A stretch of 64,000 nt of DNA from Anthoceros angustus. Its lineage: Eukaryota; Plantae; Anthocerotophyta. This document shows positions 3,251-64,000 of the stretch, piece by piece (positions within the stretch are counted from its first letter, which is position 1; every line of letters begins with the position of its first letter). A program made the translations under genes and the position numbers. The notes beneath the pieces are model-generated. The model did no database searches. It saw nothing but the letters and a program-made list of their open reading frames with translations, and was not told the origin of the DNA. The stretch lies in assembly GCA_010909165.1 (NCBI GenBank), contig MU008168.1:186001-250000 (forward strand). The letters run 5' to 3'.

Positions 3251-3269
3251 CCTTCGCCACCTGTGACCG

Positions 3270-3875
3270 CAAGCACGCACAACATAGCATTACGGACCGT
3301 AACATGACACCACATTGACCGACAAATTAGCAAAGACCTTCGCAAAGATGTGACAACAATGAATGCGAATCCCTACTCTGGTCATGAAGGAAGATGAAAC
3401 AGCGCCCATTCCAGTGGGTGCCATAGCTTGCCTCTTCGAAAAGGGAATCAAGCACTCATGAACTCGGAAGCATCATCTCCTTCCGCACTTCATCTCCCGG
3501 CAGACTCAACATGTTCACCAGAATGCCAATTGAACGCAAGCTAGGCGAGATAATGCTCACCAAGCACACAACATAGCATTACGGACCAGAACACATGACA
3601 CCACATTGACCGACAAATTAGCAAAGACCTTCGCAAAGATGTGACAACAATGAATGCGAATCCCTACTCAGTGGCCGCGGAAAGGAAGATGAAACAGGCC
3701 TGCCCATTCCAGTCGTGGGTGCCAGCCGTGCTAGCCTCTCTTTCTGAGTGCGGGAATCAAGCACTCGCATGAACTCGGAAGCATCATCTCCTTTCCGCAC
3801 TTCATCTCCCGGAACAGGACTCTGAACATGTTCAGCTTGTGAATGCCAATTGAACGCAAGCTAGGCGACAGATAA
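3270..3875. repeat. Direct tandem duplication, ~291 bp x2
   Basis: CACAACATAGCATTACGGACC...GACAAATTAGCAAAGACCTTCGC occurs near 3277 and 3568. Confidence 0.85.
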
Positions 3876-5324
3876 TGCTCACCAAGCAGCTGAACAAAAA
3901 GCATTACCTCGGCCGCCTTCGTGAGCGTGGCCTGCATGGTTGCGATGTTGTAGCTCGGAGCCGCCGCCCCAATCGCCTCCACAGACTCCACCGAGCTTCC
4001 CTCTTTGTTCATCCTCGCCATCAAAAGAGCTCAAGGTCGTTAAAATAGGAAATGAGTGATTTGAGAATCCTACAGATACGCTATGTACCAATGTGCTCTT
4101 GCTGTAACTAATGACGGCCGCAAAAAGCAATGCCGCATGGTACGTCAGACCGCTTCATTTATTCAAAACGACTACCGGATCATTAGGGTGACTCGTGATG
4201 AACGCGGTTTCTTAAGGTGCGCCCGATTAGGGTTTAATGAGAGCCGCCCTGTCCTCCCCGCCAAGCCCGAGTTACGAGAATACGCACCGCAGCATAACGG
4301 CGAACGGAGGCTCGTCCGCGTGGTGGTGTTTGAGGCACAACGATGGCGATCGAATTTCATGGACGCCATCACTGCAAGCTCCCCAACGCTTTCGGACGTG
4401 CTCATTGACGGAGAGGTGTCTTTCTTCCCAAAGCCGTGGATTTGGTCCTCAAGTTCCGGATTTGATGATGGTTGTTGGGCGCAGGACATGGCGAGCGGAC
4501 AAGCAAAAAGGACTGCCGGACATTGGACCGCCACATGGTGCCCATCGAGAAGCCCAAGGCGTAAGAAAGGAAAGAAACAAGGATGGTTGAAGAAGATCCA
4601 CCCCGACAGATTATGGTGCCGGCCGGAGCCAATCATTGCAACCGGAGGAGCATCTTGTTGGGGAGCGGGAGAGGAGGAACAAAGGTGTCGCGCTGCAAAG
4701 GCAAGCACAACCAAAGCAACGGGCGGTGTGGAGAAGCGTGGTATATCCAGAGGCCGACGCCAGTTCCAGACTCCAAACCCATCCCCTACACGTATGTAGA
4801 CAAGGCAGCCCGGAGGCACACAAACCAACTTGTGGACACGGTGCTCGGAGCAAGATTGATTTTGACACATCAAGAGCCGGATGAAGACAATGTAGTGTGG
4901 ACTCCATGTCAAGCTCGGATTTTGGGTATAACGTGCGCCGCAAACCAAAGAGCAAGAGTTGGGTTTTGTGGGCAACTATGGATGCAGCTGTGAGATCCTC
5001 AAGTCCGACTTCTTTGCACATCACGGCCAGTATGAATTTGAGGCATCTTACCACAGCAGATGATTACACCGTCTTTGTGTTGAAACTAGCATGCTTGCAC
5101 GTAAAGAAGTGTGAGCCAAAACAACTGCCTTATACTTTCCGGAGGCTTTATGAGGATGTAATGGATACATTTTCATGTGGTTGCGAATGTTTGCGTTCGT
5201 GGCAGTGAGCTACATTCTAATATCGTGGATGTTTGTTTGCTCACCAAATCTTTCTGAGATGTTTGTGTGAAGCCATCACGAACTCAATTGTGAGTCACCA
5301 AGGAAATGTCATGGAGAACACGCT

Positions 5325-8784: not shown

Positions 8785-11485
8785 GTGGAACCCGTAGTGC
8801 TAGCAGCGGAAGCCTTAGTTCCAAGAGCACGATTGTCCGGCACTGAGCGGTCGAGACGATGTAGGGCACGGCAAAGAGAGCTAACCAACACTTCTGGAGT
8901 GAGGGGGCCATCCAACTCATGTTGCCAAGCAATTGCGCGGGACTTGGGGTCCATTTTCTTGCATAGAACCCGTCATTTTAGTGCGCAAGGCAGGTCCAGG
9001 GTGTTGGAATCGTTTTCTCGCCTCCGTAGTCTTCAGAAGTTTCGTGCTTCCACGGTGGGGTTCTGGGAGCAATCATCACGTCCTTCTTCGAACTCTAAGG
9101 ACGCAAAGCGGCAACGTGTGGCGCCATTTGTGTTTCGCAAGCACATCATCCATTTCCTCGATACCTCGCAGTGATCGCTTGTTCCTTTTACCATTGCCGG
9201 ACACCATAGCCCGGTATGTAGAGTGTCTACCGCTTGTTGATGGGGATGGTCTTTAGGGTCCATCGCGCATCCACAGCCCTATATATGTCATTTGTACCGA
9301 CCTTATGCATTTTTGGCTCGATGTCACTTGGGGTGAGCGGACTCCCGCCACCTTGTGCCTCAGGCTACATATGTTGTGCTCGTGTTGCCGCGGGCTCTGT
9401 GCCTGATTACACTTTGCTTGTAAAGTTTGTCACTTCATGAGATGGAATGGCAGAATTTGTGGCTGCCTAGACCACATGCCCCGATCCAGGCTGCAGTTCA
9501 AGTGTCAGGGGTGAACCTGCATGTGCCCGCTTGTATATGCTCTCACACGGACTGATGAGCGATTGTTGTTGCTGACGCAGACGGAGTTCTTCCTCCGATT
9601 TAAGAAGGAGCATCCTGAGATCAAGATAGCTCAGCGCGCGTTTGAGAGGTTGAAACCCTTCTACATCAAATCCTTGCAGGAGCGCAATGTATGCTGCTGC
9701 AGGTATCACGTTGAAATGGCATTTCTGAAGGATGCGCTCAACCAACCTGGGTGTCCACAAAGGTTCACCTAAGGTCTCAGATGCTTGTGTGCTGTGGGTC
9801 TCATGAGGTGAGAACGCTCACAAGACCAGCAGCAGGCGAGTTGCTTTGGCTCGGGAAATGGCGATAGTGTATTGTGCCCTAAAGCACCGATGATGACTTT
9901 CATAAGCGGAAGTGTTTGATGGGGAATTGTAACTTGTGCGGTGTTCAAAAGCTTCAGTTCTGCCCTAACGAGGTCAATGCAACCTTGTTGCCTGCTGCAG
10001 CATTGAAGTGGCGTTGTTTTGAATACCAGAACGTCGGGTAAAATGAAGACGGCACTTCCAAGTCCAGAATCAAGCTTGTATACAAGTAGACTCACCCATC
10101 TGAAATGGTAGAGTTTCTCAAAGGGAAGTTGAAACATTTCATCACTCATGATTTCGTTCAGAGATGGCAGGCTTTGGAGTTCCGCAAGTGTTTGGAGTGG
10201 TTTCCTGAGGATGTCATTGTGTCAGTCATTGATTTTTCCCAAAACTATGCTTTCCAAGTGCAGAACGAGATCCAAAGCATGCATTGGCATAGTGATCAGG
10301 TTACCATTCTTGTCCATGTTTCTTACATGAGGACTGGTCCAATTGTGGAGGAGGACCCATTTTGCAATGTTCAAAAGTTCTATCATTTTACATTAGCGAT
10401 GACATGCAAAGATGACACCCTCTTTGTCCAACATTGTCTCATGGTTCACTGGGAATGGTTGCTGAGAAGCGGGTATACTAGACCACGGGAGCATTGGATG
10501 TGGAGTGATGGGCCGCATCCCGCTCAAGGCTTGCAGCTGTTATTTTGTGGCCGATATCCGCCGAATCAAGGGTGCAACATGTTGTGGAGTTATTTTGGAT
10601 CAGGTCATGGGAAGGGAGAACATGATGGCGCAGGAGCCATACTAAAGAGAGCACTGCGAGCCGAAGAATTGTCTCCCTCCTCAATGAGGTTGCAGGGGGC
10701 TGCTGATGTGGTGGATTTTCTGCGCCGTGAAGTCTCTAATGGGGCAGCATCTTCGTACACCAGTGGCGACAGGCAAGTGAAGCGAATATTTTGGCTTGTT
10801 GAGAAATCTGAGGTAAACCGAAGACAGAGGTGGGGGTGTGCTCCGATACCAGGTTCCAAAAGCATGCACTCCATTTATGGGTATTCTCAGGATGCTTTGA
10901 ATCCACAGCCCAAAATGCGACACTTGGCGTGCTTTTGTGGTGCTTGCATGGACTGACCATGCGGTTGAGAGACAAAGGCCTCGTGGAATTGCAATGTGAC
11001 CTTGAAGCCTGATATTGGTGACAGGCAGAGAATTGCAACCTGGCAACGCAGTGGAACCTTGTCGATTTCGAACATCGCGAGGCGACAGGAACTGTAGCCA
11101 TCGAGGAAGCCACAGAGGATGTCACTGAGATGGCTGAGCTTTTGGAGGAGGGCGATAACTTTGTTGTGCCTGCAGACACAAAGGATGAAGGGTCAACCTT
11201 CTACTTGGTCAAGTGCATCGAGTCTTGTCACAAAACGGATGTGCTTAGAAAGTGTCCTTGGAGCAATAATACTTTCCTCCTGTGTGATGAAATAGTTGTA
11301 GGCCAAGATACTGTGGGCTTGAGCCAGACGGATCTCTTTACACACTAGACCTTAATGAGGCAGAGTGCATACTTCCGGCTGCATGTGTGCAGACTTGTAA
11401 GTTTGCACTGTTGCAGCGGATGGTAGACGGACGTGAGGTATTTCAGTTAGATGCAGACACTCTAGACACGTTCAGATCGACATAA
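8785..11485 (+). mobile_element. Sola2-like DDD DNA transposase gene (frameshifted, probably one intron)
   Basis: VIDFSQNYAFQVQNEIQSMHW (D at 10231), WMWSDG (10501) and YFGSGHGKGEHDGAG (~10590-10635) give the Sola2-type catalytic triad pattern. Upstream FFLRFKKEHP...FERLKP...RNVCCCRYH. Downstream CFCGAC and a GDNFVV...FYLVKC C-terminal domain. Confidence 0.7.
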
Positions 11486-12599: not shown

Positions 12600-14420
12600 C
12601 CTTCTCGATCAACACAAAGGAGCAAGCTCTACTTAGGGGCTCTTTACACGCAGCCCTCAAAATGCTACTGCCGGGTTCATCCAAAAGTGGCACTTCATTC
12701 TTGTTGTTGGGCTCCATCTCTCCTGCTTCTTCAAGGACGACCTTTGTGGCTTTCACCAAGCTTGCACGAAGGACAACCGGACTCCAGTTTTCCCTTGTTC
12801 AAGAGCTCATAAACACCGGGACACTTGAATAGTTTCCTTCAACTCGGTTCCCTTGGGAAGAGCATCACTGCTCCAACAAAATCAAGTGGAAGCGTAACTT
12901 GTGAACCCCCGATGCACTTCGGGACGTAGAAGTTCACGTGTTCATCATTGTCGCCCCTCACCGCCACCACGTAGTTGTCTCCGGCTCCACCGGCATCGGG
13001 GTCCACCGGCTCGCAACCACCTCGACTTTGTCGGTCGCTTTGTCTTAGTCGATTGCCTTGACTTCCGTTTGGACCCCCTGGTCTGGACTTTCTCTCCACT
13101 CGCACTGACCGCTGTTATAGATTGCGCAGGGGTAGCCTGATTTGGTTCTGACGACTGTGCTGGTGTGACATCCGGACGTATCACCGTCTCTACCTCAGGT
13201 GTTTCTTTCTCCAGCTCTGGTGACTTCGTGCCCACTACCAGTGATCCTTTTTCCACCTCACGTGCTGGCTGCACTTCACCCGCCGCTTGATCATGCACAA
13301 CTCCACACATGGTGGTGGCGATACATGCTAGTGCATCCATCCAGCTCATGGTGTGCCAAGGCTACTGGGTGGCATGGTGTTGATACCATGCAACCGCACC
13401 TCAACTCTTGGGAAGTCCTGGGGTTCTGGAAGAGCTTGTGGGTTCTGCGCCTGACTGTCCTCCTGATCATGTGTGCCCTGCAAGGCATCTGCAGATTCCA
13501 AAGCTTCCATGGCCTCCACCACGTCCCGGGGTAAGTTTGGAGGTGTGTCATTTGTCTGCAGCTCCTCCAACTCATCACACCTCCTAGCACCAGCCTGCTC
13601 TCCCACTTCAGTGGTCTGTCCACTTGCATGCTTAGTTGCCCGGACTTGCACCTCCACTCGCTTCGGCTGTATGAGGGTAGCAATCAAATCCTCCTTTCAT
13701 CCGGGCAGCACAATACAAATGGAGCCGGGAGCCCAACCAATTCTCCGTGCCTCGGAAAATAATTTTGCGTGTTCCTTATAGGAACACGCCGAGATCCACT
13801 AGATAGTAGTGGCAGCTTCTCATAACATGCTGCACAAATGACAAAAGGAATATTGTTGTCAAGATCCAACCTGAAGGAGCATAATGTCAACGGGCTTACC
13901 AACTTGGGAGCATAATGAATTAGCCTGCACAAACAGAGATACCTGGAGAAGCGGCCGGTGGGATCTCCTGTCGCACCCGACGTTGTACTTTGTCCAGCTG
14001 TGTGAGGAAGTGATCTGGATCTTTGAGGAGGTTCAGGAACTCAGACTCCCATTCCTTAACCTGTTCAGTAACCCAATCGCTCATTGTGGGTACTACCTGC
14101 AGTTTCCAGCCTTTTGCTCTCATCCATCGGGGGTCAACTTCCAGCATACAATCTTCTAGTGCACAAGTGTTTGTCCCTTGCAGATGCTGAAACAAGCATG
14201 GCTCGTGGTACATGTGCCCACAAGACAACATGATCCGCTCACAAACCCAAACCACCGCGTGAATGAAACATCGAGATAGGAAAAGACTCGTGAGGCAAAG
14301 ATGAAAACCAAGTTCACAATGTGGATGCAAGAACCACAAACACTCTGGCTCGGCATCCTGGTATTACTGAACAAATAGGGCGGCACGTAGATGGTTGGTG
14401 CACTCTTCCTTTCCAACGGC
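12600..14420 (-). pseudogene. RING-finger protein fused to a domain paralogous to the transposase C-terminus (frameshifted)
   Basis: VCGSC (~14330) ... IMLSCGHMYHEPC ... TCALEDC is RING-H2-like. A second ICAACY Cys pair follows, then an acidic linker, then GDNYVVAVRGDNDEHVNFYVPKC...SLVKATKVVL, which resembles GDNFVVPADTKDEGSTFYLVKC...CVQTCKFAL of the transposase. Confidence 0.55.
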
Positions 14421-26099: not shown

Positions 26100-29000
26100 C
26101 TACGTACTGAGACATGAAGTGTCCTTTGAGTAGAATATCGGGTAAAAGCTACAAAGCAGAACAAACTGGAGATTCAAGCTGGACTCTGCTCAGACTGAGC
26201 ACCGCCTGTCAGTTGAGGGTGAGGGCGTACATGGCCTGAGATCCAGAATACCTTTGGCTGTTCCCCAGCTTGCTCTTGGGTCCAAGACAAAATGCACGCC
26301 TCAGCACTCGCTTCAACGTAATCTGCGACCAAATTCAGCGATAGCTCGGTGAGAAACTTCAACTTACTCTTCCTCCAAAACGAGAGCGCGGCAGCTCAAA
26401 GACAACAGCTTTACCATAAAGCGGGGACATCTCCGAAGTCGAACGATCGCCTTTTCTGCCTTCCTCCTTTTGGCCAACGCTTGGGAACCTAGACGTGGTG
26501 ACTTGGGAGAGTCCTCCCACTCGCTCCCGCTTCCTGGGCCATCGTATATTCTGCCTGAAGGAACCCTGCCGGAGCTGAGCCTTCCAGAGCTTAACCTGCT
26601 GGAGCCCACACGCAGCTTTCTCGAGGACCTGGACCCTCTGCTGCTGGAGCCAGCCCTCAGACTAGCGAAGCTTGAGATGGACTCGGGATTCAGCTGGCCA
26701 GATTTTGGCTTGCTCTTGCCCATTTCCTCTGGCGGGGTTGATTCCAGGCGTTCTGCCTCATACCTCCCGCTGCGGTTTCGCTTCAAGCCGGGCTGCTGCT
26801 GCCCTGATAGGTCTGCCACCTCTGCCTCCCTGTCCCTCAAGAAACAGTTGCCGAGCGAGTTCTTTTGAGTCGGTGCGTCCACTGCTGGAGTCATGTTCTC
26901 CCGTTCGCAGCCACTGTGATCAACGCTGTCCTCCTTTCCTCGTTGGCTGTCGAGGTTCATGGAGCTGTTGGAAGAGCTCATCTCCGCGGGCCCAGCCAGG
27001 ATGCTGCTGGGGGAGTAGACGTCCTCAACAACGTTCTTGTTGTGAGGTTGAGAATCTGAGAAACAGCCTGCCACACAGCAGCCCAGATGGGTCCGTTAGT
27101 ACAAGAGATATGTAAGTGATGAAGCAACTACCATTCACAGGAGCCCAGCCACCGATAACATAAGAGCAAGAGATGCACTCACCCGGTTCACCATCAGCCA
27201 TGCCATGAATGTTGGGTGAAAGGCGACTCATCTCGTCCTTACTGACAGGAATGGGCAGCCTCAAAGCATGGCTGAGATGAGCAACGTCGGTCAGTGTGCA
27301 GCCAGCGTGAAGAAGGCTTTGGAGGCGGGACATGCCCTTCTTGTGGTCCGGTGAGGAAGTGCCCCCGTTCTTGGCGCCATGCCTCTTGGGAGACGCAGCA
27401 CCGCCGCGGGGAGGTTTGCTGGGTGATGCCGGGATTGAGAACCCACAACTGATGCCCGAGTCCAGCTGCTCGGGAGGAGACCTGCAATCAGGTTCTTGCA
27501 GAGGGCCTGACCCCTGTCTGCTCTGGACGCCTGACCTTGTCACTGGGCTGACAACACCGGAGTGAGAAAGAGCCCCAGACGGGAGCTGAAGCCGTGGAGG
27601 TGGTTGCAGAGAGTAGCCCGCCTGCTTCTTAACACTGACAGTGGGGGACTTGGGTTTCCCAGGAACATCTTCCCACTTGAAAGGCACAGCAGCAGACACC
27701 TTGAACGGATGAAGAAGGCTTCTGCCCAAGTCAGCACTGATGTCATCTGCGCAAACACACACAAGGTTGGAGATGTCAGACAAGCCCGCAGACTCGACAA
27801 GAAAGTTACATCAACAGGGTAAGCTTACCACATGGCAGCGTCAATCTCACCTGGATAGGGCACCGTGTCGAGGAACTTGGCAGCAGGAGAAGCAGTGAGA
27901 TCAATGTGAGCGCCATCAGTATCACTGTCAGCAAAGGAGCCATAGTAGTGCCTGGATCCCCGTGATCGCAACACGGGTACTCTCTCCAAGCTGCTCACCA
28001 CACTCGCTTCCAGGTCCGGAACCTGCCGCTCATTATGGGCAGAGGCCTTCTCTGCAGCCTCAGGGCGAGGATTCAGAGAAGCAGGTCCGCAGGTGCTCAG
28101 AGTCTTGAATGAAGGGAAGTTGTGATCAAGACAAGACGTGGCTCCAGACGAAGAAGCGAGAGCCTCGGCCTCCATTTTCCTGAAACTCGCATTCAACAGT
28201 GCTTCCAGCTTCCGCTGGCTGTTCTGCCTGCTGTCCGCCTTGGAGATCTTGCGTAGACTGCTCTCCCGCGAATCCTGCTTCGAAATCTTGCGCAGACTGG
28301 CATCAGCCGGCACCGGATCCTGCTTCAGGGGTATAGTCGACGCCGCTGCCACAGTAGGTTTAGTATCTTGGGCAGCGAAGAGGAGGACCTTGTCCGGGAT
28401 AGCACTATCGTCCATAGACCGAGACCTTCTAAGATCCTTCTTGTAGCTCCAACTCACCCTGCTCACTAGCGCCTGCACGTCCTTGCCGAAGCTCTTGAGG
28501 GAGGACGTCGAAGGGGTTGGGGACGAGACAGACGGGAGATTGCCAGCGTTCTTGGCAGCCGCCGATGGGGCGTACAACCCGCATTCTTCCTGCACCAATT
28601 CATCCTGCCCGAGAGCCTTCGACGCCTGCTTGCCACTTCTCTGAGACATCCCAACCGGCGACTTCCTGCACACGGCCTCCGCTCCCGCTTCACCGCTGAG
28701 ACGAGTAGAGCTCGGCTTCAGATCCCTCCCGGAGCCTCGCAGGGGCTTGAGAGCCGGCGCACCGAATTGGTCGCTCCCCTTGATCCCTTCCAGCGACCCT
28801 GACTTGGCCAGCCCCTTCCTCCCAGCACCACCACGGTTCTCGAAATGCGCAGCAGGCGCAACATGGACGACCTGCTTCTCCTCCGGCTGCCCAACATCAC
28901 TCACAGGGCTGCTACCGCTGCTGTTAGCAATGGACTCCTTGATAGAACTCTCCACCTTGGGAGGCAAAGGAAACACCGGCCCCTCCCGGAGCTTAGTACC

Positions 29001-30651
29001 ATTGTTCTCCATCCGGCTCCCAGCTCTGACAAGAATCTCCAGCTCCCTCATACTCTCCTCGTACACAGCATCTTCATACGTCGCATCCTCACCGTAATCC
29101 TCACCCTGATCTTGCTCATCATCGGAGCAGGCTTCCTCCACCTTCACGTCCGCAGTCCCCGTCCGAGCGTACGAGAAAGTGTTCCCGGAATAGTGACTCC
29201 CCCGCTGCAGCTCCATCGAGAATCCCCTCCGCCCAGCAGGAAGCAGAGGAACATGCGTGACGACGTTACTGGCAACCCCTCCCGCCGCCGCCGCAGCACG
29301 CCGGGTGGAGGCCCTGTTCCTGAGCAGATTAGAGAGCTCTTCCTCCAGGCTTGCGAGCTGCGACTTGCTCTGCTCTCCCTTCCCGCCTCGCACCCCCGCA
29401 TTCCCGGCATTGGACGACCTCCCGGGCGAAATGATCCCGCTCTGGTAGAAACTCCTGCCAGGAGACGGCACGAAGGCTCTCCCAGGCGAGGGCGTCCTGG
29501 CCTGCTCCCGGCTGCCAGCACCATAGCCCGCTCTGGCGGCCCACTCTTCGAACTGCCCAACACGCAGCACGTTCGGCCGGTTCCTGTCCGCGTCGTTGGA
29601 TGCAGCGTCGTGCTTGGGGCTGGGGCTCGGGGAGTAGAGAGGGCGAGACGGCAGCGGCATCGGCCCGCTGTGCCGCAGATTCCTCCGCACCCCGCCGGCA
29701 GCCGCGTCCCCGACACCCACCCCGGCGTCCCTGTCCCAGCCGATCTCCGTCCCGGCCTGCGCCCCGCTCAAATTCCTCCGCTCCCTCCTCCCGGACTCCC
29801 ATGGCAATTCGAGTCCCGCAGACGAGGTGGAGCCCGCGAAATGCAGCTCGTGCGAGCGCGACATGAGACTGGGCTTCACGGACACGCTGCTGGAGCTGGT
29901 GGAGGTGAAGGACGAGATGACCGTGGGCACTGAGGGCCGAGGGAAGGTCATGGGCTGCCGCGGCAGCACGAGCTCCGCCTCCAGCAGGTCGGAGGGGCCG
30001 TCCAGAGACTCGGACAGCTGCGACATGTGCTCCGACTCCTCCAGGATCTTCTCCAATGCCGCATGGTTCTGTTCACCCAAAGGCAGAAAATGCGGGACAG
30101 CCGCCTCCTCCTCCTCCTCCTCCTCCTCCTCCTCCACCTCCTCTTCCACTTCCACTTCCACTTCCTCTTCCTCTTCCTCTTCCACCACCTCCTCCTCCTC
30201 CTCCACCACCTCGCCCACGGCAATCACAGCCGAGGCAGGCTCTCCAGCCCAGGCCGGTTCTCCGAGAGGTCCCCGGCCATCGCACGCGTCCTCCTCGTGA
30301 GCTTGTGCACCCGCCAGCCGCTCCCGCTCCGCAGCCTCCTCTTCTTCATCCAGAGCACCCACAAGCGGAAGGCGAGCGCTTGCACCTGGCTCCGCTGCTG
30401 GAATTCCAGCTTCATCACACCCGCCAGCGGAGGCGGCGGAAGCGGAGCCTGAGGTATCGGAGTCAGGTCGGACGTCCCAGACCCGGACCCGGAGGAGGTG
30501 AGGCAGGAGCTCCCGCTCCGCCGCTGCTGCTACTCGCAGTGTCCGCCTCCAGACACCTGTCGTGCTCCTGCTCGAGCTCCCGGGCCAGCAGCTCCTCCTC
30601 CTTAACACCTTGCCGCGCGCCTGGCGCCGGGGCCGCGTACAGGACCGCCAT
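26100..30651 (-). CDS. Very long low-complexity protein with an internal DUF688-type motif (~1350 aa if one early frameshift is corrected)
   Basis: ATG at 30651 (MAVLYAAP). The 927-codon frame joins in phase 1 via intron 27850-27747 to DDISADLG...AAVPFKWEDVPGKPK, then via intron 27182-27056 to DSQPH...SPSSILAGP. It ends at 26364, or via a GTAAGT donor to a last exon 26148-26100. Confidence 0.7.
30100..30208. repeat. (TCC/TTC)n trinucleotide tract encoding poly-Glu in the minus-strand gene
   Basis: Direct reading; the minus frame gives EEEEEVVEEEEEEEVEVEVEEEVEEEEEEEEEE. Confidence 0.9.
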
Positions 30652-32544
30652 CTTCACGAACGCAGCAGCGGGGCAGCGGCAGCAGCAGCAACAGAAACCG
30701 AAGCAGCGGCCGGTCGCTTCACGTCCATCCCCCGGGCAGCGGGGCTGGCAGAGAGGGCAGAGCGCCTCGTACTTTCCCCCGCTTCCCTGCAGGGCTCGCA
30801 ATGCGAGAAGACGAAGGCAATCAAGGGCCGTGCGAGGCCGGCAGCGGGGCCGGGACAGGGACAGGGACTGGCAACCCACCACTGCAAAAGCACTGCAAAG
30901 CAACCCGTAGTCGCCCTTGCGCAACAGTCGCAGTCGTGAAATGCAATGCCGCGAGTGGAGAATTTGCTTCGAGCCCCGCCTGATTCCCGGCGCAAAGCCC
31001 GCAGTGGCTGTCAGCCCTGTCAGGCGTCGATCGTGAATGCAGGCGCAGGCGCAGGCGCAGGCGCAGGCACAGGCGCGGGAACAAGAGGGAAGACGCAGGA
31101 GGGAGCAGAAAGAGCGTGTTCGTGAGGGAAGAAGCGCGCTGCCCTGCCCGATTTCACGCGCCCGGCGATCGAACCCTCTCCCACGCAATTCTCAATATAC
31201 AACCCCTTTTTTACAACATGTTGGTATACAACACGAGAAGAAGGCGAAGAAGGAGAAGAAGGAGAAGTCTATAATAGAACCCCACTCACTCTCCCCACAC
31301 AACTCTCAGTACGCGACACTTATTTCACAACGCATTCGACGAGCTCGCGACGCCGAGGCGAGAGTCCCGTGGGAAGTCCCACGCGCTAATAAAACACGAA
31401 AGCTCACGGTACTAAAACCGGGCTCGCGGTGGCGGGTTAGGGTTAGGGGAAGCGCGCCGAGGCGTGAAGTGAATCGTGACGGCGGCATCGTAGGCCGGCA
31501 TCGATGAGGAGGGACAAGAAAAGCGAGGCAATTCGCGCAGCGGGCGCGGCTGGGAGTGGGAAAAGATTTCGGCATGCGCGACTGTCGCTGATGCGACAAA
31601 GGGGAATGGGAGGGGCTTGGCAGGCGCCGGGAGAGGGGGCCATGTGCTGATCGCATGGCCGGGGGCTATTTCCGTGAGCATCCCAGGTGATGGATAAAGG
31701 CGAGCGGGCTCGGAGGGCGGGCCGCCATGGGCCCATGGCATGTCGCGTCGCCGATGCCGTTGCCCCCTTGCCTCCTCAGCCTCATCCAGATCCAGGGCCC
31801 GCCAAACGGCCCTGGAAGCCCCAAATTCAACCACCATCCTTGCGGAACCATAACCCTTCAAACATTCCACGGCGCTTTGCTTTCCACAAGCGCGGGTACC
31901 CGAAACACGACCCAAGGGGCAGCCATTCCGGCCGTGTCATAAATGCGGGGCGGGGCGTCCGCTGCCTCCTTGTGCAAAAGGAGGCTGCAGCTGCAGGCTT
32001 TGGCGCCTCTTTACAAATCCGCCACGCGAACGTCACGCTCGCCGCGCTTCTGTCACTCCGGTTACGGAACCTGCAGGCTGCACCGGTGACCGGACTCACC
32101 GGGCAACGGTTTATGTGCATGCCATGCGCATGGTGCCGTGAGAGTTGGCCGGAATCCACCGCCCCGGACATTGGGAAACGTATATATGCCTACCGGGAAT
32201 GGGGAATGTTGGGATGGGATGGGAATGCGCGCCAACAAGCTTTTTCACTTCCTCGCACAAAATCAGTGCCAACCGTGTACTCTCTCCATCCACTCCTAAG
32301 ATGTAGGCGTTCACTGTATTGGATTTCTCACATCCCCCAACTCCCAACTCAACCTTTAGAGCTACCAACCCAAAAGACAAAAGTAGTTAATGGGACAAGA
32401 CAAGATTGCAAAAAGAGCATCCACTCTACGGCAGTGTGGTTTGGGATTTTGCACTTTTATAGAATAGGGGCTATTACCTCCACCAACACATACCCTCCAC
32501 ATAGCAGCTTCAAATCTAGATCCCAATCTCTAGGCAAGTGTGCT

Positions 32545-35750: not shown

Positions 35751-37430
35751 ATGAAACTCCTAGGGGCCCGGTGCAAGACCGGCCCTGGCATGGCGGCATC
35801 CTCCCTGCTTGCCTCGCTGTGCGCTGAATCTCTCCAGTCGCCTCGTGTGCAGAAATCTATGCTGTCCAGAGTGAGGTCAGGGAGCGTTCCGGATGAGAAG
35901 GCATTGCAATGTGCGGAATTGCTACGCAGGCAGTTGGCGCCCGCACCCTCGCTGAGGCAACAGTCGGCCACCACATGGGGATGGTGTGCTGGGAAATGTT
36001 ACCAGCAAGCGGGCGTGCGGAGGTATTGTGCGGAAGCTGCAGCGCGGGATGTTTCAGCCCAATCGTCGGCATTTGCGGAGCCTTCTGTCACACCCGGCGA
36101 GGTGAACACGTATGCGAAGGAGGTGTCTGGGCGGGGACAGGTGTTGGCGTACCTCAAGTCGGAAGGCGTGGACACCAACACCAAGGAGCTGCGGGAGGTG
36201 GAGCTGCCAACCACATTGGAGGTGATGCAGGAGAGAATCAAGTTTTTGAAAAAGATTGAGCTCACGGTGGATGACATCAACAACTATCCTCTCATGATTG
36301 GATGCAGCGTGAAGAAGAACATCATTCCTGTCCTTGACTACTTAGAGAACATTGGGGTGACCAGAGCTGCACTGCCTCATTTGATCAGGAAGCATCCGCA
36401 GGTGCTGCATGCTAGCGTGGTGATCGATTTGCAGCCAGTGGTGAGCTATCTCAGGGGCCTCGGCATCGACAACAAGGATATTGGGAAAGTCTTGACTCGG
36501 TACCCAGATATTCTGGGGTTTAGGATTGAAGGAACCATGAGCACTTCTATTGCGTATCTGGTCAGCCTGGGAGTGAATGTGAGAGAGGTGGGAGGAATGC
36601 TGACGGAGTACCCAGAAATTCTTGGCATGAGAGTGGGCAACAACCTCAAGCCTAAAATAGACTATTTGATCGGCCTCGGGATTCCGAAAGGTGTCATTGC
36701 AACCATTCTGGAGACAAGGCCGTTTTTGTTGGGCTTTGATCTTGACGATCAGATAAAGCCTGCTGTTGATGCCCTCCTGAAGATTGGTGTCAGGAAGGAG
36801 GTGGTGGGAGATGTTGTGGTGAGATTCCCAGACCTCCTGGGTCTGGATGTGATGGCCAAGTACAGCCCAAAGCTCACCTGGCTGATAAAGAACGCAGGGA
36901 TAAGTCAGAATGATGGTGTTGAGATCCTCGAAAAGCTTCCTCAAATACTTGTCATCAACGTGCCGCTTGCAGGCACCAGGATTACAGCTCTAAGCGAAGC
37001 AGGGTTCAGCCTCCAAGACATCAGGAAGATGGTGACCCGGTGTCCTGTCCTCCTCGGCTTGAGTGTGGAGCAGGTGTTGAAGCCTCATTTGGAGTACTGC
37101 TTGACACAAATGCAGCGACCTCTGAAGGAGCTTGTTGAATTCCCAGAGTACTTCACTTATGATCTGGAGGGAAGGGTGAAGCCCCGGCACCAGCGTATAA
37201 CCGACAAAAAGATCAAGTGCAGCCTGTCATGGTTTCTCAAGTGCAGCGATCAGCAGTTCAAGAGTAGGTTATCAGTGGATTACGTGCAGCCACCCAGCAG
37301 CGAGGATGAAGCTGACGAGCCAGAATTCAGCATGGGTGGACGTCTGCAACTGCCCGAAGACAAAGGGGATGTAGTGGATGAGGAGGAGGAAGAAGAGATC
37401 CGGAAGCTGAACATGTCTGCCAGCTCATGA
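35751..37430 (+). CDS. mTERF4: mTERF family organellar protein, mTERF4/BSM/RUG2-like; intronless, N-terminal transit-like region
   Basis: 559-aa ORF with PVLDYL...PQVLHASVVIDL.PVV.YL.GL...GFRIEGTMSTSIAYLV...YPEILGMRV...FPEYFTYDLE.RVKPRH...KCSLSWFLKCSDQQF. Confidence 0.9.
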   Translation: MKLLGARCKTGPGMAASSLLASLCAESLQSPRVQKSMLSRVRSGSVPDEKALQCAELLRRQLAPAPSLRQQSATTWGWCAGKCYQQAGVRRYCAEAAARDVSAQSSAFAEPSVTPGEVNTYAKEVSGRGQVLAYLKSEGVDTNTKELREVELPTTLEVMQERIKFLKKIELTVDDINNYPLMIGCSVKKNIIPVLDYLENIGVTRAALPHLIRKHPQVLHASVVIDLQPVVSYLRGLGIDNKDIGKVLTRYPDILGFRIEGTMSTSIAYLVSLGVNVREVGGMLTEYPEILGMRVGNNLKPKIDYLIGLGIPKGVIATILETRPFLLGFDLDDQIKPAVDALLKIGVRKEVVGDVVVRFPDLLGLDVMAKYSPKLTWLIKNAGISQNDGVEILEKLPQILVINVPLAGTRITALSEAGFSLQDIRKMVTRCPVLLGLSVEQVLKPHLEYCLTQMQRPLKELVEFPEYFTYDLEGRVKPRHQRITDKKIKCSLSWFLKCSDQQFKSRLSVDYVQPPSSEDEADEPEFSMGGRLQLPEDKGDVVDEEEEEEIRKLNMSASS

Positions 37431-46820: not shown

Positions 46821-48011
46821 CTAGAACGACACCACCATTTTCTCTGGAAGTGTCCACGGGTTGAGCTCTGAAGATAGTAAGGGCACGAAGAGATGTGCAG
46901 ATCCATCGTCGTCCAGGCCCTGAAAAGTCTTGGGTGTGTCGGCATCCGCGTTCGCATAAGTCTGCTGTGGGAGCAGAGGCAGAGGAGCAATGGAGGAGCC
47001 GCTCCAAATGCTGGATCGCCTGAAAGTGTGATACACAACCACGCTTCCTCCTGATAACTCCTTCCTGAATGTTCTGTCGCAAAAATAACCTCGAGGATAG
47101 ACAGAGGTGTTCCAGCTAGACGCCCTAGTGTTATCTCCTGTCAGAAACACCGCCACAGAAAATACTTCCGGCCTGAACACGGCAGCGGCTCTGTCCAGGA
47201 GAGCTTGCAATGTGATGTCTTCTTCGTTGTAACCCTTGGTCTCGAAGCTGGCATAACTGAAGGTATCCTCCGGAGTCACATGGATGGTGGAGTATGCCGC
47301 TCCCTCCATCCCGTTCATAGAATAGCCGCAGGGATCGAATGCGAAATCGCAGATTTCCGATCCAGGCAATATATCTGCAATCCCTGATACTTTTGTCATT
47401 TCCAAGGCCGAGGGGAGCACACTTTTCTGAAACTGTGAAGCACACAGGGTGTCGAGCTGAGTCATACACATCTCCACTGTGTACACAGGATCAGTCTCCC
47501 TGCACAATGCTCCTTCCTCCACTGCGTAGTAAACATGCCACTTGTGGCGATCTTCTTCGTGGCCCATAACCAGCCACTCCCCACCGTCCTGTCCGCCAAG
47601 ATGGCCGAAAAACCTGTCTAAAAACTTGACCTCCTCCCTGAAGCTGTTGTGCGGATAGGGCTGCACTGCAGGGAAATTAAAAGAACCACGAGTATACCTG
47701 CAAGTCACAGCTCTGAGATGCAGCCGGGAGGCTGAAGCCAACAAGACGGGCACAGCCTGCAGCAACTGTGTGGTGCCGCACGTCTTGATCACCATGCTGC
47801 GAGAGTATATAAACAGGCTCGACTCCGAAAGAACGTAGGAGTCGAAATGCTCATTGCTCAGCTGAGACACAATTGTGCACTCAGCTGCCTTGAGCATGGC
47901 ATCAATTTCTGCACGGGCCATGGCGCGCAATCCCATTCCTTGTGCAGCAAACGGCCCCGCAAATCCTACCTCCAGCCTCTTCTCATATCCCTCAAACCCT
48001 GGCAACGACAT
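46821..48011 (-). CDS. SAMDC: S-adenosylmethionine decarboxylase proenzyme, 396 aa, intronless
   Basis: MSLPGFEGYEKRLE; YVLSE/SSLF self-cleavage site; IKTCGTT; FDPCGYSMNG; TIHVTPEDTFSYASFE. Confidence 0.97.
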   Translation of the reverse strand: MSLPGFEGYEKRLEVGFAGPFAAQGMGLRAMARAEIDAMLKAAECTIVSQLSNEHFDSYVLSESSLFIYSRSMVIKTCGTTQLLQAVPVLLASASRLHLRAVTCRYTRGSFNFPAVQPYPHNSFREEVKFLDRFFGHLGGQDGGEWLVMGHEEDRHKWHVYYAVEEGALCRETDPVYTVEMCMTQLDTLCASQFQKSVLPSALEMTKVSGIADILPGSEICDFAFDPCGYSMNGMEGAAYSTIHVTPEDTFSYASFETKGYNEEDITLQALLDRAAAVFRPEVFSVAVFLTGDNTRASSWNTSVYPRGYFCDRTFRKELSGGSVVVYHTFRRSSIWSGSSIAPLPLLPQQTYANADADTPKTFQGLDDDGSAHLFVPLLSSELNPWTLPEKMVVSF

Positions 48012-48192
48012 TTCCCTCCCCCCGAGCCTTCCCGAACTCGTTTCCTTCAGGATCAAATCCCGTGCGCTTCCAAACTCACTTCCTCCACTGCAATTCCTCC
48101 CAGCACCTGCCTGCTAGCGATCCAACATGGGTCCTCGAATTGACTACCTGCGAGGTGGATCCGAAAGCAAGAAGGTCGCCTCTTTCCCCCTC

Positions 48193-49904: not shown

Positions 49905-50771
49905 GTGAAGCATGCTACAAATTGTGAAGACATTGCTAACAGAAACGTGTATCAATCTCAACATTTGTCTTATGGTGTAGCTCCAGGTTTGAGCATGAGC
50001 GAGGCAGGAGGTCCTTTGCTCCTCCAAACCCACACTGGGGATAATATAGTAGCACACTTACAAGGTCCTGGCTATTCCGCAACTTGGAGGCCACAATTTC
50101 AGACTGAGCTGGAAAGCCAAGGTCCTCAGAACCCGTCTGTGAATCCCAACCGTGCCGAGGGCAAGAAAAGGTCTAGGGTTCAAGCTTCAAATCAAGGTGA
50201 TTCATCACTCATTGACGAAGATAACACAGGGAAAAGGTGGGACGAATTTGAATTGCTCATATTGGTTTCTGTACGGAAGGAGGATGTAATGAAGCACAGG
50301 GACGGCGGTATGAAAGAAAAGATGACTCCTGCCAACACAAGATGGGCTGTAATTTCAACTTCATGTGCAAGCCATAAGGTTTACAGGATGGCGAAGCAAT
50401 GCCGTGATCGCTGGGAAGCTCTCATGACGGACTTCAATAAAGTCGAGGATTGGGAGCGACCTGGTCACAATTCAGGACGGAGCAGCTATTGGAATATGGA
50501 GAAGGCTGAGAGAATTGCTCAAAAGCTGCCCAAAGCCTTCCTCCGGACCCGGAGCTGCTCACATAGTACGTTGATAATTGAATGCCTATTAGAAATCCCC
50601 TTGGTAATTGTCCTGTGCGGGCTGCAATTGCAAGAGCAGCCTCCAATTGTTGACATGATGTATCAAAGGTTATCAAGAGCATCATCTAGAAGTCTCTGGT
50701 CATCCATGCTCACAGATCTTAAAGATAGCCCGCAATCGGTGATGGCAGCATCACTACTCCCCTCAAAGTAA
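49905..50771 (+). CDS. Trihelix GT-1/Myb-SANT-like DNA-binding protein (C-terminus probably degenerate)
   Basis: RWDEFELLILVSVR...RWAVISTSC...R.AKQCRDRWEALMTDFNKVEDWE...SYWNMEKAERIAQKLPKAF. True start uncertain. Confidence 0.75.
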   Translation: MKHATNCEDIANRNVYQSQHLSYGVAPGLSMSEAGGPLLLQTHTGDNIVAHLQGPGYSATWRPQFQTELESQGPQNPSVNPNRAEGKKRSRVQASNQGDSSLIDEDNTGKRWDEFELLILVSVRKEDVMKHRDGGMKEKMTPANTRWAVISTSCASHKVYRMAKQCRDRWEALMTDFNKVEDWERPGHNSGRSSYWNMEKAERIAQKLPKAFLRTRSCSHSTLIIECLLEIPLVIVLCGLQLQEQPPIVDMMYQRLSRASSRSLWSSMLTDLKDSPQSVMAASLLPSK

Positions 50772-56330: not shown

Positions 56331-56748
56331 CTGCATGGATCCTTGGCTGGAATTAGGTAGCTGGATTGTAAAAAGTTAAGAAAAAATCTATGTTGTTGTT
56401 GTACATGTGTGTTAACACAACTTCTAGACGCAATCAAGCGCCTTCGAATAAAGAGCTGGAGCATGAACCATCATTTTTTAAACCTGTTTCACATACACAT
56501 TAAAAGTTCTGGATGTCGGGTTTTAGTGTGGTTCGTGGATTTAGTTGTGGCTTACGTCCTTGATAGTGTGGAAGTGGAGCACGAGATCAAGGTGAGGTTG
56601 CCTGATTGTGTGTGGTGGTGTTTAGGGTAGATGGGAGAAGTTGTGGGAGAAGGGGGAAGTCGGTGGTGGTGTGGGAGAATGAGAAAGTTGGTGGTGGTGT
56701 GGGAGAATGGGGAACTTGGTGGTGATCTGGGATGCAGTGTTTCTAGCT

Positions 56749-57160
56749 GTGTGGGAGGCAGGGTTTGCGGCTGTGTGGGAAGCAGGGTTTGCGGCTGTGT
56801 GGGAGGCAGGGTTTGCGGCTGTGTGGGGGGCAGGGTTTGCGGCTGTGTGTGGGGCAGGGTTTGCGGCTTCGTGGGAGGTAGGGTTTGTGGCGGTGTGGGA
56901 GGAGGTGTGTGTGCGGTGGTGTGGGAGGAGGTGTGTATGCGGTGGTGTGGGAGGAGGTGGAGGTCACATATGGGAGGAGGTGGTGTGCGGTGTGGGAGGA
57001 GGTGGGTGCAAGTGTGGGAGGATGTGGGTGTGCGGCGGTGTGGGAGGATGTGGGTGTGCGGCGATGTTGGAGGAGGTGGGAGGACGGCGATGTGGGAGGA
57101 GTTCGTGTTCGGCGTCGTGGGAGGAGGTGGGAGGGTGGCGGTGTGGGAGGACGGTGGCGG
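56749..57160. repeat. G-rich 24-bp minisatellite x~6 grading into GTGGGAGGAG-type repeats
   Basis: GTGTGGGAGGCAGGGTTTGCGGCT units from 56749; the minus strand reads (TQPQTLPP)n. Confidence 0.85.
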
Positions 57161-57199
57161 TGTTGGAAAACTGCGGCAGCGGACATCGGCGTGATTGTG

Positions 57200-60015: not shown

Positions 60016-61151
60016 TGGCTTGGACTAATTTTGTTTGGTTTGCCTCTCTCACCCCGCTAGGAAGTACTATCGCTGCGAAAGAGGTGTTTAGGATTCCTAG
60101 CACCGTTAAAAATCCTTGAAATCCCTTCCTTGTGAAGGTGAAATCCATGAACCTTCTTGGCTTCAACCACATTAGCGTAAGTATTCACGAGAAAATAACA
60201 TGGTCAATGTCTTTCAAGACATGTCTAAAGAGTGGTTTTGCTAAAGATGATGCATTTTGGCCTGCTGGGTCATTTTTGGTCTTTAGGGACCCAAACCCCT
60301 TTAATGGAGAATAACCCCTATGCTGAGAGACGCTGTTATGTGGTGGATCTGGGCTGGAGATGGACCTGGCAAAGGTCTGGAGATGGACCTTCTGGTTGGA
60401 GAGAAGGAAGTGATTGATGAAGGGATGTTCGTTGTGGTTGCTAGAGAGAAGGGCGTGCAAGATGGGAGCTCGCTGTCTTCTATTACAATTGTTTGTGGTC
60501 TTCATGGATTTGACGTAATCCACATTTGCTGATTCGGTGCTGACCCTGTTTTCTGCTTTCCGTCTTGCAGGATTGCATAGCCTAATAAGATGGCTGTCTT
60601 TGAAGAGGAGCTTGAAACATGATAATCTTGGAAGGGGGTTAATATACAAACCCCCTTCCGCACAACTGAAACCCCCTTCACAAAAAAGACACCGTTCGGG
60701 AAATGCAAAATACGTCGAATCCTCCGTTTACAGCACCATGCTAAATACGAAAGGGGAAAAAAACATTGATATTTCACAATTCATAAAACAGAGATCGGGC
60801 GCGGCTGGCCGGGCGCCAGAGTATCCTTGCCGGCTATGCTTTGACACAAGTAATGAAAGAAAATGATATCATCGCTTCAAAACCCTCTTCCGTCCCTCGA
60901 ATATAGTCTTTCCTCTACAAAGATCCCTCAGCGGTGATCGAGACTCATCTGCGCTTGGGTGGCTTCAATCTAAAACAATCGCCAGTTGCGCATGCTCCAA
61001 TTCTACATCAAGCCGCTACCGCTGGCCTTCGCTTCATCATCTTCTGCGTTGTCGCCTGCCCTTGTCGCCACCACTCCTGCATCGCACATGATCTGTGGTT
61101 TGTTGTCCTTCCTCTAGCAAGTCCCCTGCTTATGCTTTCATCCTTCTTGCA

Positions 61152-64000
61152 CTAAGTGGAACCACCGAGCCGAACAATTTTTTCGCTAATACAAACTTCT
61201 TTAGCCTGACCAGGCCGCCTCCGTGGGCCTCGAATGTGAGCTCCTCTTTCCACCGCAAAACCTCGAAACCATGTATGCGTTGTGGGATATAACCAGACAA
61301 TGGAGGTCACCTCTATTGCAATAGAATTGCCCGAAAGCAATGCCTGTTGTTGTCCCACTTCGCAACCATCCGTAATCCAATCTCCTTCTTTCGAGAATGT
61401 TTTGATGAATTTCATCATCAACCCGAGAGGTCTTTGGTAGGCACACCACCATTTTGTCTTGAGACATGTACACCGCTTCTTCACCACGATCATGTGCAAT
61501 CACGGATCGTCCATTGTTAAAAGTCCTCACAGTAATATTGGGCGTCATAGCCGCCTTGCCTTCCTTCACACACCAAGCAACATGTACTCCAGTCTCAAAT
61601 CCACCGTCATTACTCATGTTTGTTTTGTCCCAAACGAAGGACACCATTCCACCCTTGCCACATAATCCACGCATGCACTCTCTCACAAGGTGAGCTTCTT
61701 CCACTCCGTGCATGACAATGAGCCTGAATTCTTCCGCCGTCGTCTTCTCCGGAAGCTTTGGAAAATCGTGTTCATCATGCCCGCATCCAACCGACTATCC
61801 ATAGGACCAATGTCAAAGCCTCTTGGGACATCCATAACCGAAGGGTATAAGCCCATCAAGGAATCCCGCATCTCCATAATGTTTCTTTTTCCACTTGATA
61901 GTAACACTCTTTCTCGCACCGAACAGGAACAAGTGCACCTTTCAAATCCTTGTCACGATTGCACGCGCTCATCCTCAAGACTCTTCCAGTTGTTAATCTC
62001 AAATATGAAGTTCTTGAAATCCTCCGACTTTTGCAAATTCTCCACATCCTTTATTGTCAACGCCGTGGAAAGAAAAACGTTAGAGCAGGACACCACATTC
62101 CTATTGTATTCAAACAAGGTCGATGATGAAGGAGGGTGTGAAAGACGCCACCGACCGCGCCTTCACACCCTCCATCGACAAATTTGGTTTGCGGTGCCCG
62201 CACGCCGGCGCCGCCGCCGCCCGCCGTAGGTAGAGCAGACATATGGCGCCGGCGCCGTGACATGTGCAGTTCACAAGATTCAGAGGGGGGAGGCGCGCCG
62301 GCCGGCGCCTCCCCACTATCGTGCCATTCTCGACAGAGCGGGACGCCGCCACGGCCTCAATGCAAACGAAAACCAAAGCGACTCATTGTCGTGGTGACGG
62401 ATCTCACCTTCCCAAAGAAAAGCCGTTTGAAACCGAGCAATCATGTCGTCCGTTGAGTGTAGGGATATTCCTTCCTCACTTCCTCGAAGATGAGCACTCG
62501 GATGTTTAGCCATGGCCACTTGAATAACATGCGGTTTCTTTCTTGAAGTAATTTCGTCCTCCATTCCTTTGAGATCGAGGATGCACAAGACCTTCCGCCG
62601 TGACAAGAATCACGCCCACATTCACCCATCGTATACCGGAATGATTTCCGGGTTTGAGCATGTCTTTCGGCTTGAAATACACCGTTTCCACGTGTTTGGG
62701 ATCATCTGTGACTTTCCTTTTCCCTTCCCTTTCTTGCCGCGCAGTATGTGCTTCTTCCGCCCGTAACTACCGCTTCCCACTTTGAAAAGATCTTATCAAT
62801 ATTATCCCATACCTTGCCCTCGCTCATGATGCATGTATGTGTGTCATGTTGTCCACTTTGTTCTGCTTGTACACGTCATCTTCGCGGCCTTCATCATCTT
62901 CAATTAATCCAAGAACCTTATAAAGATTGAACTTCCATGACATGGTCATCTGCACTCCATCCCGACGCGCAATAAGAAGCTCATCTCGTAAATATCTTAC
63001 ATTCAATAAAAGACATTTTCTTCCGCTTGTCGACATTGTGTTATGGTCGGTTGCAAGAACTCTCATCTCGTGCACCGTAAGCCCACAGATACATGCGCTT
63101 CAACATATTGAAAACGGACTTCCGAGCAATATCGCCAAGTGCTTCATAGCAAGATATGTGGTTCCCCAAGTACACCCATAATATATTTCTTGGCCCGAAT
63201 TTCGCCATCAACTTGCTAATATCGTTGCACTCCCGGGTCAATCATGCATGGCGTAACCCTTCTTCAATCCTTCCTTGAATAACTCGGGCTAGGTAGTTTG
63301 ACCATGCCTCGTCCACCTCCCGATTTGGGCATCCGGTGTAATAAAAGATCTTTCAAATTCTCAAGCTTTACGACTGCCTCCGAACAACTTTCTTGGCATA
63401 GGCGAGTCCACGATTATTGTCAATGGGTCGATTCGGATAGCATCTTCAAGTCTTTCCTCATCTCGCACATGGATGCTATGTTCTCTGGTGGGCTTCACTC
63501 ACGGTTTCCTTCCCGGATTTCTTCTTTCTCTTCCCCTGTGGAGCCTCGCTATGTGAGCGATGGTATGCCCTGCGGCCCACCATGCCTTGCTCTCCCACTC
63601 GAGTCCCTGTCCATACTCTCGGATCGGCGGACACGGAGGTGCCTCAATAGAACCGCGCCGCCCACCGCTCACCGTCTCTTCCGCAACAAGTGCAACCAGA
63701 TCGGCCGGCCGGCGCCCAACCCTTCGCAGTGCCTTGGGAACCCGAAACCGGTTGGGGTCCGTGTAACCAGTCTCAAAGACTTATCAGGAGGGGGCCGGCC
63801 GGCGCCTCACCTCCGCGATACCACTGGGTACCTCCATGGAGGAGCCGGAAAAGGAATGTCCAAGAACATCCTTCCATCCTCGCCTCCCGAAAGTCGCCAT
63901 CGTCGGAGTGGCCAAGGACGTCGGGTATACACCCATCCTCCTCATCAGATGGGCCGAGCTCACTAGCTGCACTGCGCTCGGCTTCGGTGAGCCCGTCATG
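61152..64000 (-). pseudogene. ParB/Srx-like domain + beta-class DNA N4C/N6A methyltransferase, copy 2 (all MTase motifs present; frameshifted; continues beyond the window)
   Basis: ParB-like KKYIMG..GNH.YLAMKHL...HEMRVLATDHN at ~63170-63050. MDVPRGF with DVPR at 61832-61821. FVWDKTN at 61632-61618. YQRPLGLMMKFIKTFSKEGDWITDG from 61439, then SGTTTGIA in a shifted frame, then GNSIAIE back in frame. This is the beta-class motif order IV...X-I-II. Confidence 0.85.

Follow-up and report, generated by a model that had tools for sequence, protein, structure and literature searches.

A probable relic of a repeated gene family joining a ParB-like module to a beta-class DNA amino-methyltransferase in Anthoceros angustus

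Two copies of one gene in the window

The 64,000-nucleotide (nt) stretch of Anthoceros angustus DNA analysed here (assembly GCA_010909165.1, contig MU008168.1, positions 186,001 to 250,000; hereafter the window) carries at its end, on the minus strand at 61152-64000, a disrupted gene designated copy A. Copy A is very probably a non-functional relic from a dispersed, repeated family whose product combines a ParB-like DNA-binding module with a beta-class DNA amino-methyltransferase of the adenine-N6 or cytosine-N4 (N6A/N4C) type. The pseudogene is delineated by three-frame translation and by a collinear tblastx chain (63961 to 61600) with a second copy in the same window, copy B, and its 5′ end extends past the window edge.

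A sequence-only reading had reported strings of ParB-like and methyltransferase motifs on the minus strand of 61152-64000. All of these strings are found there when the coordinates are read in three frames; most match copy A, but 'VY.GLT' and '(M)EY' match copy B instead. None of the three minus-strand frames of copy A holds all of the motifs, and the path that connects them crosses all three frames and meets stops. From the N-terminal side, this path includes an acidic block, ELGPSDEEDG (63914-63961), which lies in a tblastx high-scoring pair with 69% identity to copy B 5370-5417. The ParB-like region (62992-63331), defined by DNA alignment with copy B, contains VDEAW..GRIEEGLRH, KKYIMG (63174-63191), GNH (LGNH, 63158-63169), TYLAMKHL (63136-63159), EAHVSVGL and GLTVHEMRVLATDHN, with HEMRVLATDHN at 63040-63072. 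It is followed by the best-conserved central block, DELLIARRDGVQMTMSWKFNLYKVLGLIEDDEGREDDVYKQNKVDN (62836-62985), which has 82% amino-acid identity to copy B. The methyltransferase part comprises the motif IV block VMDVPRGF (61815-61838); motifs V-VIII (61555-61740), with FRLIVMHG, LVRECMRGLCGKGGMVSFVWDKTN and VHVAWCVKEGK; the string GGMVSFVWDKTN (61618-61653); motif X and the residues leading into motif I, YQRPLGLMMKFIKTFSKEGDWITD (61368-61439); and motif I itself, SGTTTGIAFG (61330-61359). The DNA reads motif I in a frame shifted relative to its neighbours, and GNSIAIE (61311-61331) returns to the earlier frame.

Copy B, identified by tblastn, tblastx and translation, is a collinear homologue of the same gene on the plus strand at ~5300-7961 (tblastx chain E 9e-64). 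The ParB-like core of copy B runs in a single frame at 6515-6673, from KKYIMGGRGNHTYAAMKQLG to QEMRVLATHHN (KKYIMGGRGNHTYAAMKQLG...FQWMEAHVYRGLTLQEMRVLATHHN). Because the core is read in one frame in copy B, the corresponding string in copy A, a composite from three frames inside ~25 codons, represents true sequence homology rather than motif picking. The copy A-copy B chain, the frame-specific codon contrast and the methyltransferase profile scores described below likewise speak against a chance origin of the motifs. The motif IV block of copy B (7692-7715) also reads D-V-P-R, and homology to copy A ends after FVWDKTN...MEYITVGW at ~7961. Copy B is itself frameshifted and truncated, with an in-frame stop (at ~6698) and a 4-nt deletion of its own in the area of 6698-6724.

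Several repeats lie in or near copy B. A GC-rich tandem array (5689-6062, plus strand; periods of ~43-48 and 88 nt) with near-palindromic GCGCGCATGCCGGCGCC cores is located inside the copy, and the counterpart region of copy A is ~380 nt shorter and lacks the array. By analogy with proposals for red-algal elements, the array could be ParB-site-like, or it could be a plain minisatellite. On the 5′ side of copy B, window 299-1150 and 1958-3326 includes a 251-nt tandem repeat (3.4 copies). A repeated ...KKEKM.RL.GIVQPVT... peptide recurs in three minus-strand open reading frame (ORF) pieces of this region (1958-2377, 2350-2787 and 2673-3326), an indication that copy B is preceded by a repeated unit.

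The family extends beyond these two copies. Only one DNA sequencing run contains the stretch, and it yields low-coverage short contigs from many copies: 262 short variant contigs with a word depth of ~90 to 2600 over most of 61100-61500 and 62600-63420. The contigs over copy A show many alternative indels and, being a mixture of copies, are unsuited to re-polishing copy A. The depth and the variation point to a diverged multi-copy family, and the earlier suggestion of a multi-copy system is upheld by these contigs and by the presence of two copies in the window.

The methyltransferase and ParB-like parts

The motif order of the C-terminal part is that of a class beta methyltransferase. In a MAFFT alignment of the read-throughs of copies A and B (joined by X at the breaks) with seven phage and plasmid N6/N4 methyltransferases, the motifs follow the order IV-V-VI-VII-VIII ... 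X-I. DVPRG is paired with DPPY/DLPYG, IVMHG with the strand after RVLK, GGMVSFVWDK with the W-x-K block, YQRP with HPTQKP, and SGTTTG with GSGST.

Profile comparisons give the same assignment. A local hidden Markov model (HMM) built from the seven methyltransferases matches the 115-residue motif X-I piece of copy A with E 2.6e-4, the sole significant match among 1991 six-frame pieces of the window. The copy A read-through scores 23.9 bits with this model, and none of 1000 shuffles exceeds 4.3. When the HMM is built instead from three methyltransferases that were not chosen via the query, the C-terminal half scores 8.1 (at most 3.7 in the shuffles, none of 1000 reaching the observed score) and the N-terminal half gives p ~0.004 to 0.015. 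A tblastn search of phage genomes with the 115-residue piece returned 87 weak matches (best E 0.02); DNA methylase annotations account for 13 of the top 15 rows, and the nearest matches are annotated as adenine-specific. The assignment of the C-terminal part to the methyltransferase fold is sound at the level of sequence, and the earlier proposal of a beta-order amino-methyltransferase domain downstream of the ParB-like segment is supported.

The predicted active site is unusual. The motif IV pattern (D/N/S)-P-P-(Y/F/W) is absent from both copies, which read D-V-P-R with the aromatic residue replaced by arginine. Some phage methyltransferases have DLPY or DIPY, so valine is tolerable in this motif. 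Catalytic competence of the DVPR motif is doubtful because the aromatic residue is an arginine. Motif I, DGC-x-SGTTTG, spans a frameshift in copy A, and copy B ends before it. With respect to specificity, a serine in the strand-4 motif points to N4C activity (Iyer and colleagues, PMC4738411). The aspartate of motif IV, together with the adenine-methyltransferase neighbours, favours a putative N6-methyladenine (6mA)-type ancestry over an N4-methylcytosine (4mC)-type ancestry.

The N-terminal part fits the block pattern of the ParB family, with L..GRIEEG.RH followed by KKYIMGG.GNHTYAAMKQLG and then ..EAHVY.GLT..EMRVLA..HN. Among 100 Atlas language-model neighbours of the copy B piece, 36 are ParB_N and 13 are DUF6551 (scores ~0.92). 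A MAFFT tiling alignment misplaced the ParB piece and was dropped. The ParB label, which draws on the motif pattern and the language-model neighbours, is reasonable but unproven.

A number of results weigh against these assignments. Pfam and NCBIfam gave zero matches on the single-frame pieces (8 to 14 pieces tested), and the best PHROGs match for such pieces was phrog_18293, a methyltransferase family, at E 0.06 with the motif X-I piece. A phmmer search of a 197-residue piece against 1.8 billion representatives returned no match, as did word-based searches with the same piece and with the alignment of the central blocks of copies A and B; short decayed pieces cannot attain significance in libraries of billion-sequence size. 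The ParB piece has no match in Pfam, PHROGs, NCBIfam or the PDB, and its motif reads G-G-R-G-N-H-T-Y-A-A, with a threonine at the position of the arginine expected from the conserved G-x-x-R / D-G-x-H-R motif. The AlphaFold model of an 84-residue ParB piece is unusable, with a predicted local distance difference test score of 51.

Other searches were likewise negative. In the PDB, phmmer with three pieces found no methyltransferase or ParB match; the ParB piece matched nothing in the phage tblastn search; and a metagenome scan with patterns from the most conserved block recovered no relative. A bacterial ParB-methyltransferase fusion was sought as a backbone, and the plasmid and phage methylases that were fetched are all stand-alone proteins.

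Selection on the protein and decay of the copies

Codon comparison of copies A and B reveals long-standing constraint on the protein. Over 305 codons in the inferred frame, the Nei-Gojobori proportion of synonymous differences (pS) is 0.75, which is saturated, versus a proportion of nonsynonymous differences (pN) of 0.22; in the two shifted frames of the same DNA, pS is 0.26-0.29 and pN is 0.32-0.35. In the central block (62836-62985), pS is 0.70 versus a pN of 0.125, corresponding to a dN/dS of 0.07. The compared blocks were picked by amino-acid similarity, which biases pN downward and is answered only partly by the shifted-frame control. The motif IV block VMDVPRGF differs between the copies by three synonymous codon changes and no replacement, and GGMVSFVWDKTNM differs by six synonymous changes and no replacement. 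Because the pS/pN contrast is confined to the coding frame and these two blocks have changed only synonymously, it is concluded that the protein, including its odd DVPR motif IV, remained under long-term selection in the ancestral lineages of both copies.

Both copies have since been broken. Aligned globally at the DNA level (~1 kb, 980 aligned nt), the copies have 64% identity and 21 gaps, 18 of which are not multiples of three (1, 2, 4 and 7 nt). Copy A carries approximately ten frame-breaking indels of 1, 2 and 4 nt, not restricted to homopolymers, as well as premature stops. In its ParB-like region, lesions are found at ~63248, 63160, 63140, 63123 and 63088, where copy B is continuous (6500-6697). 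Further downstream, lesions at ~62834, 62740 and 62721 fall where copy B is open (6724-7041); the first is a 1-nt indel followed by a premature stop at 62824-62826 (minus strand). Additional shifts are located between ...EEAVYM and KTKWW... and on either side of SGTTTG.

Introns were considered as an explanation for frame changes common to both copies and were rejected: the lesion positions differ, and the spacers are ~50 nt. The frame changes that seem to be shared are independent lesions a few codons apart, and introns are therefore not needed to account for them.

Two genes in the window served as controls for base-level assembly accuracy. An mTERF-family gene (35751-37430, plus strand; 559 residues) and an S-adenosylmethionine decarboxylase gene (46821-48056, minus strand; 411 residues) are both intact and intron-free, and each matches its full Pfam profile (E 8e-98 and 3e-102, respectively). 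Because these genes of the same window are intact, assembly error is unlikely to be behind the lesions of copy A, and the suggestion that the frameshifts might be sequencing artefacts is not supported. No contig of the same-sample RNA run maps to 61152-64000, and no RNA run is listed as containing the stretch. Copy A is broken and apparently silent.

Carrier, related systems and significance

Genes of this composition have been described on algal transposons. The Ectocarpus element Sola1-1_Ec32 (21.5 kb) encodes a 1104-residue protein with a ParB-like part and an N4C/N6A methyltransferase, located opposite its transposase; transposon accessory genes of this ParB-plus-methyltransferase kind, published for Ectocarpus, are also cited for green and red algae (PMC12477816). 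By its description, the Sola1-1_Ec32 gene shares with copy A a ParB-like N-terminus, an N6A/N4C-type methyltransferase C-terminus, a eukaryotic nuclear genome and a repeated element as their setting. They differ in that copy A has a plant-like host, is dead, carries DVPR and has no adjoining transposase in view. The algal precedents show that the sequence-only reading had overstated the novelty. Copy A is a decayed member of an already known kind of transposon-type accessory gene.

The chances are about even that copy A derives specifically from a Sola1-type DNA transposon, whose transposase would lie past the window end on the opposite strand, as in Sola1-1_Ec32. The window itself contains nothing that shows such a carrier. 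ORFs in 1-5.3 kb and 56-61.2 kb gave no informative Pfam matches and no transposase homology. No terminal inverted repeat or target duplication is tied to copy A or B, and the flanks have no shared terminal-repeat-like match. Moreover, related modules in red algae reside on Plavaka/EnSpm-type elements, and the carrier superfamily is not fixed. The transposon association proposed earlier is thus not demonstrable in the window, with neither a tied transposase nor terminal repeats.

A transposase-like gene, the only one near the copies, is present downstream of copy B at 9470-10953 (plus strand), where CCC-x-x-H and C-x-x-C-x-x-C blocks precede an intact 288-residue ORF with IDFSQNY...QSMHW. This DDE-like ORF (10090-10953) is on the same strand as copy B, and its Atlas neighbours are DUF7869 and an ISAzo13-like DDE fold. 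Its relatives reach 45% identity among ENA, JGI and Logan contigs, and Klebsormidium nitens KFL_010490010 is 40% identical. The ORF was examined as the transposase of copy B and was rejected, as the loci of its relatives hold no ParB or methyltransferase.

It is unlikely that copy A is a decayed segmental or retroposed duplicate of a host-domesticated gene instead of transposon cargo. The long purifying selection on the protein and the lack of an adjoining transposase at either copy would be expected of such a gene. However, cargo of an active transposon under selection yields an identical dN/dS signal, and the copy number in the DNA run is high and variable. The saturated dS between two copies in one 64-kb window also shows that they are not recent tandem duplicates.

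That copy A is an intact, expressed plant gene, with its frameshifts due to introns or assembly errors, is very improbable. The two shifts around motif I do cancel and restore the frame, as had been noticed in the sequence-only reading, but they are only two of approximately ten lesions, and the conclusion that the gene may be intact in vivo is not supported. The reading frame is broken within conserved coding blocks that stay open in the other copy, the indels (1, 2 and 4 nt) are not restricted to homopolymers, and the distances between blocks leave too little room for introns; the intact state of the other window genes and the lack of a listed RNA run argue in the same direction. That copy A is left over from an integrated virus, was inserted directly from a bacterium or phage, or results from a contaminant mis-join is scarcely credible: phage methylases are the nearest identifiable homologues, but with just ~30-40% identity over 45-60 residues, and the GC content of 61152-64000 (0.47-0.52) resembles that of the remainder of the window, plant-type genes flank copy A on the same contig, in line with the nuclear, plant-like context claimed earlier, and the genome has multiple, diverged copies of the family.

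The preferred reading is that of a relic from a dispersed ParB-like/methyltransferase family. Its two copies in the window separated long ago, and purifying selection acted on the protein, the DVPR motif and the FVWDK block included, while they diverged. Each copy later died and gathered frame-breaking indels and stops, and copy A is now apparently silent and without function. By extension from the published algal elements, working family members may be accessory genes of cut-and-paste DNA transposons, in which the ParB-like part would attach to the DNA of its own element. The methyltransferase part would modify that DNA or, if DVPR abolishes catalysis, just bind it.

No clear inverted-repeat or palindrome array adjoins copy A. 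A dense G-rich minisatellite field at 56642-57167 (periods of 24-28, 51, 77 and 119 nt) is composed of GGGAGGAGGTG-like units and generates spurious long ORFs on both strands. A 927-residue ORF (27825-30608, minus strand) lies in a 63% GC island, has no Pfam match and is overlapped by long ORFs on the opposite strand (28845-29933 and 30056-30910); the frame may be open because of its GC content and not represent a gene. Two further ORFs are at 49905-50771 (plus strand) and 13923-14363 (minus strand). One has a domain of the Myb/SANT-like DNA-binding type (PF13837, E 3e-9), which is frequently associated with Harbinger-type elements, and the other has weak RING-finger-like matches (best E 0.001, below the Pfam cut-off).

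In the red alga Bostrychia, giant Plavaka transposons carry PAG2 (an N6A methyltransferase with a SET domain) and PAG3 (ParB with a 2-oxoglutarate oxygenase) beside inverted-repeat arrays, and the ParB protein has been proposed to bind the repeat arrays of its own element (bioRxiv 10.1101/2025.02.11.637652). ParB-type and adenine-methyltransferase-type modules are thus carried by giant DNA transposons there as well, but on separate proteins with other partner domains, whereas they are fused in the family of copies A and B. The beta-class N6_N4 methyltransferases of phages and plasmids (PF01555; for example, the Dam-like enzyme of Synechococcus phage ACG-2014f and DpnA-like enzymes) have the same IV...X-I order and share the HPTQKP-like YQRP, the LMMKFIKTFSKEGD helix, the D-x-x-x-GSGTT loop and the W-x-K block. 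The present family differs from them in having DVPR for D(P/L/I)PY, pieces that Pfam does not score, a long N-terminal ParB-like extension and a decayed state in a eukaryotic setting. Several eukaryotic adenine methyltransferases have been traced to phage ParB-terminase loci by Iyer and colleagues (PMC4738411).

The link drawn earlier to the 4mC enzymes of Marchantia (MpDN4MT1a/b) and bdelloid rotifers (N4CMT) is weak. These are likewise prokaryote-derived amino-methyltransferases in eukaryotic genomes, but their motif IV is (T)SPPY, they are host genes that are expressed and for which 4mC activity has been demonstrated, and no ParB domain is mentioned for them; DN4MT1, with TSPPY, is an expressed sperm gene (bioRxiv 10.1101/2021.02.12.428880). 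In contrast, motif IV of copy A begins with aspartate, copy A is an apparently silent pseudogene of a multi-copy family, and the nearest matches are phage enzymes annotated as adenine-specific. With its TSPPY motif and its expression in sperm, DN4MT1 is a poor comparator.

As dead DNA, copy A is of no consequence to the organism; the family is of moderate interest. Transposon proteins that combine ParB and methyltransferase parts are a recently recognised accessory class through which an element may be able to bind its own DNA and mark it chemically, and they were not reported for land plants in the literature searched. To this class, the window adds two anciently diverged copies with the same non-canonical motif IV, maintained by purifying selection, and with an ancestry that looks adenine-type rather than 4mC-type. 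A bolder proposal, which we regard as rather doubtful, is that land plants harbour a long-lived ParB-like/beta-methyltransferase family, transposon-borne or domesticated, that has kept DVPR in motif IV throughout a divergence that saturated synonymous sites. If so, DVPR would imply either that DNA amino-methylation is catalysed in a new way or that selection has favoured a non-catalytic role, the binding of DNA or S-adenosylmethionine. Working members of the family might then still be marking the DNA of their own elements in the genome.

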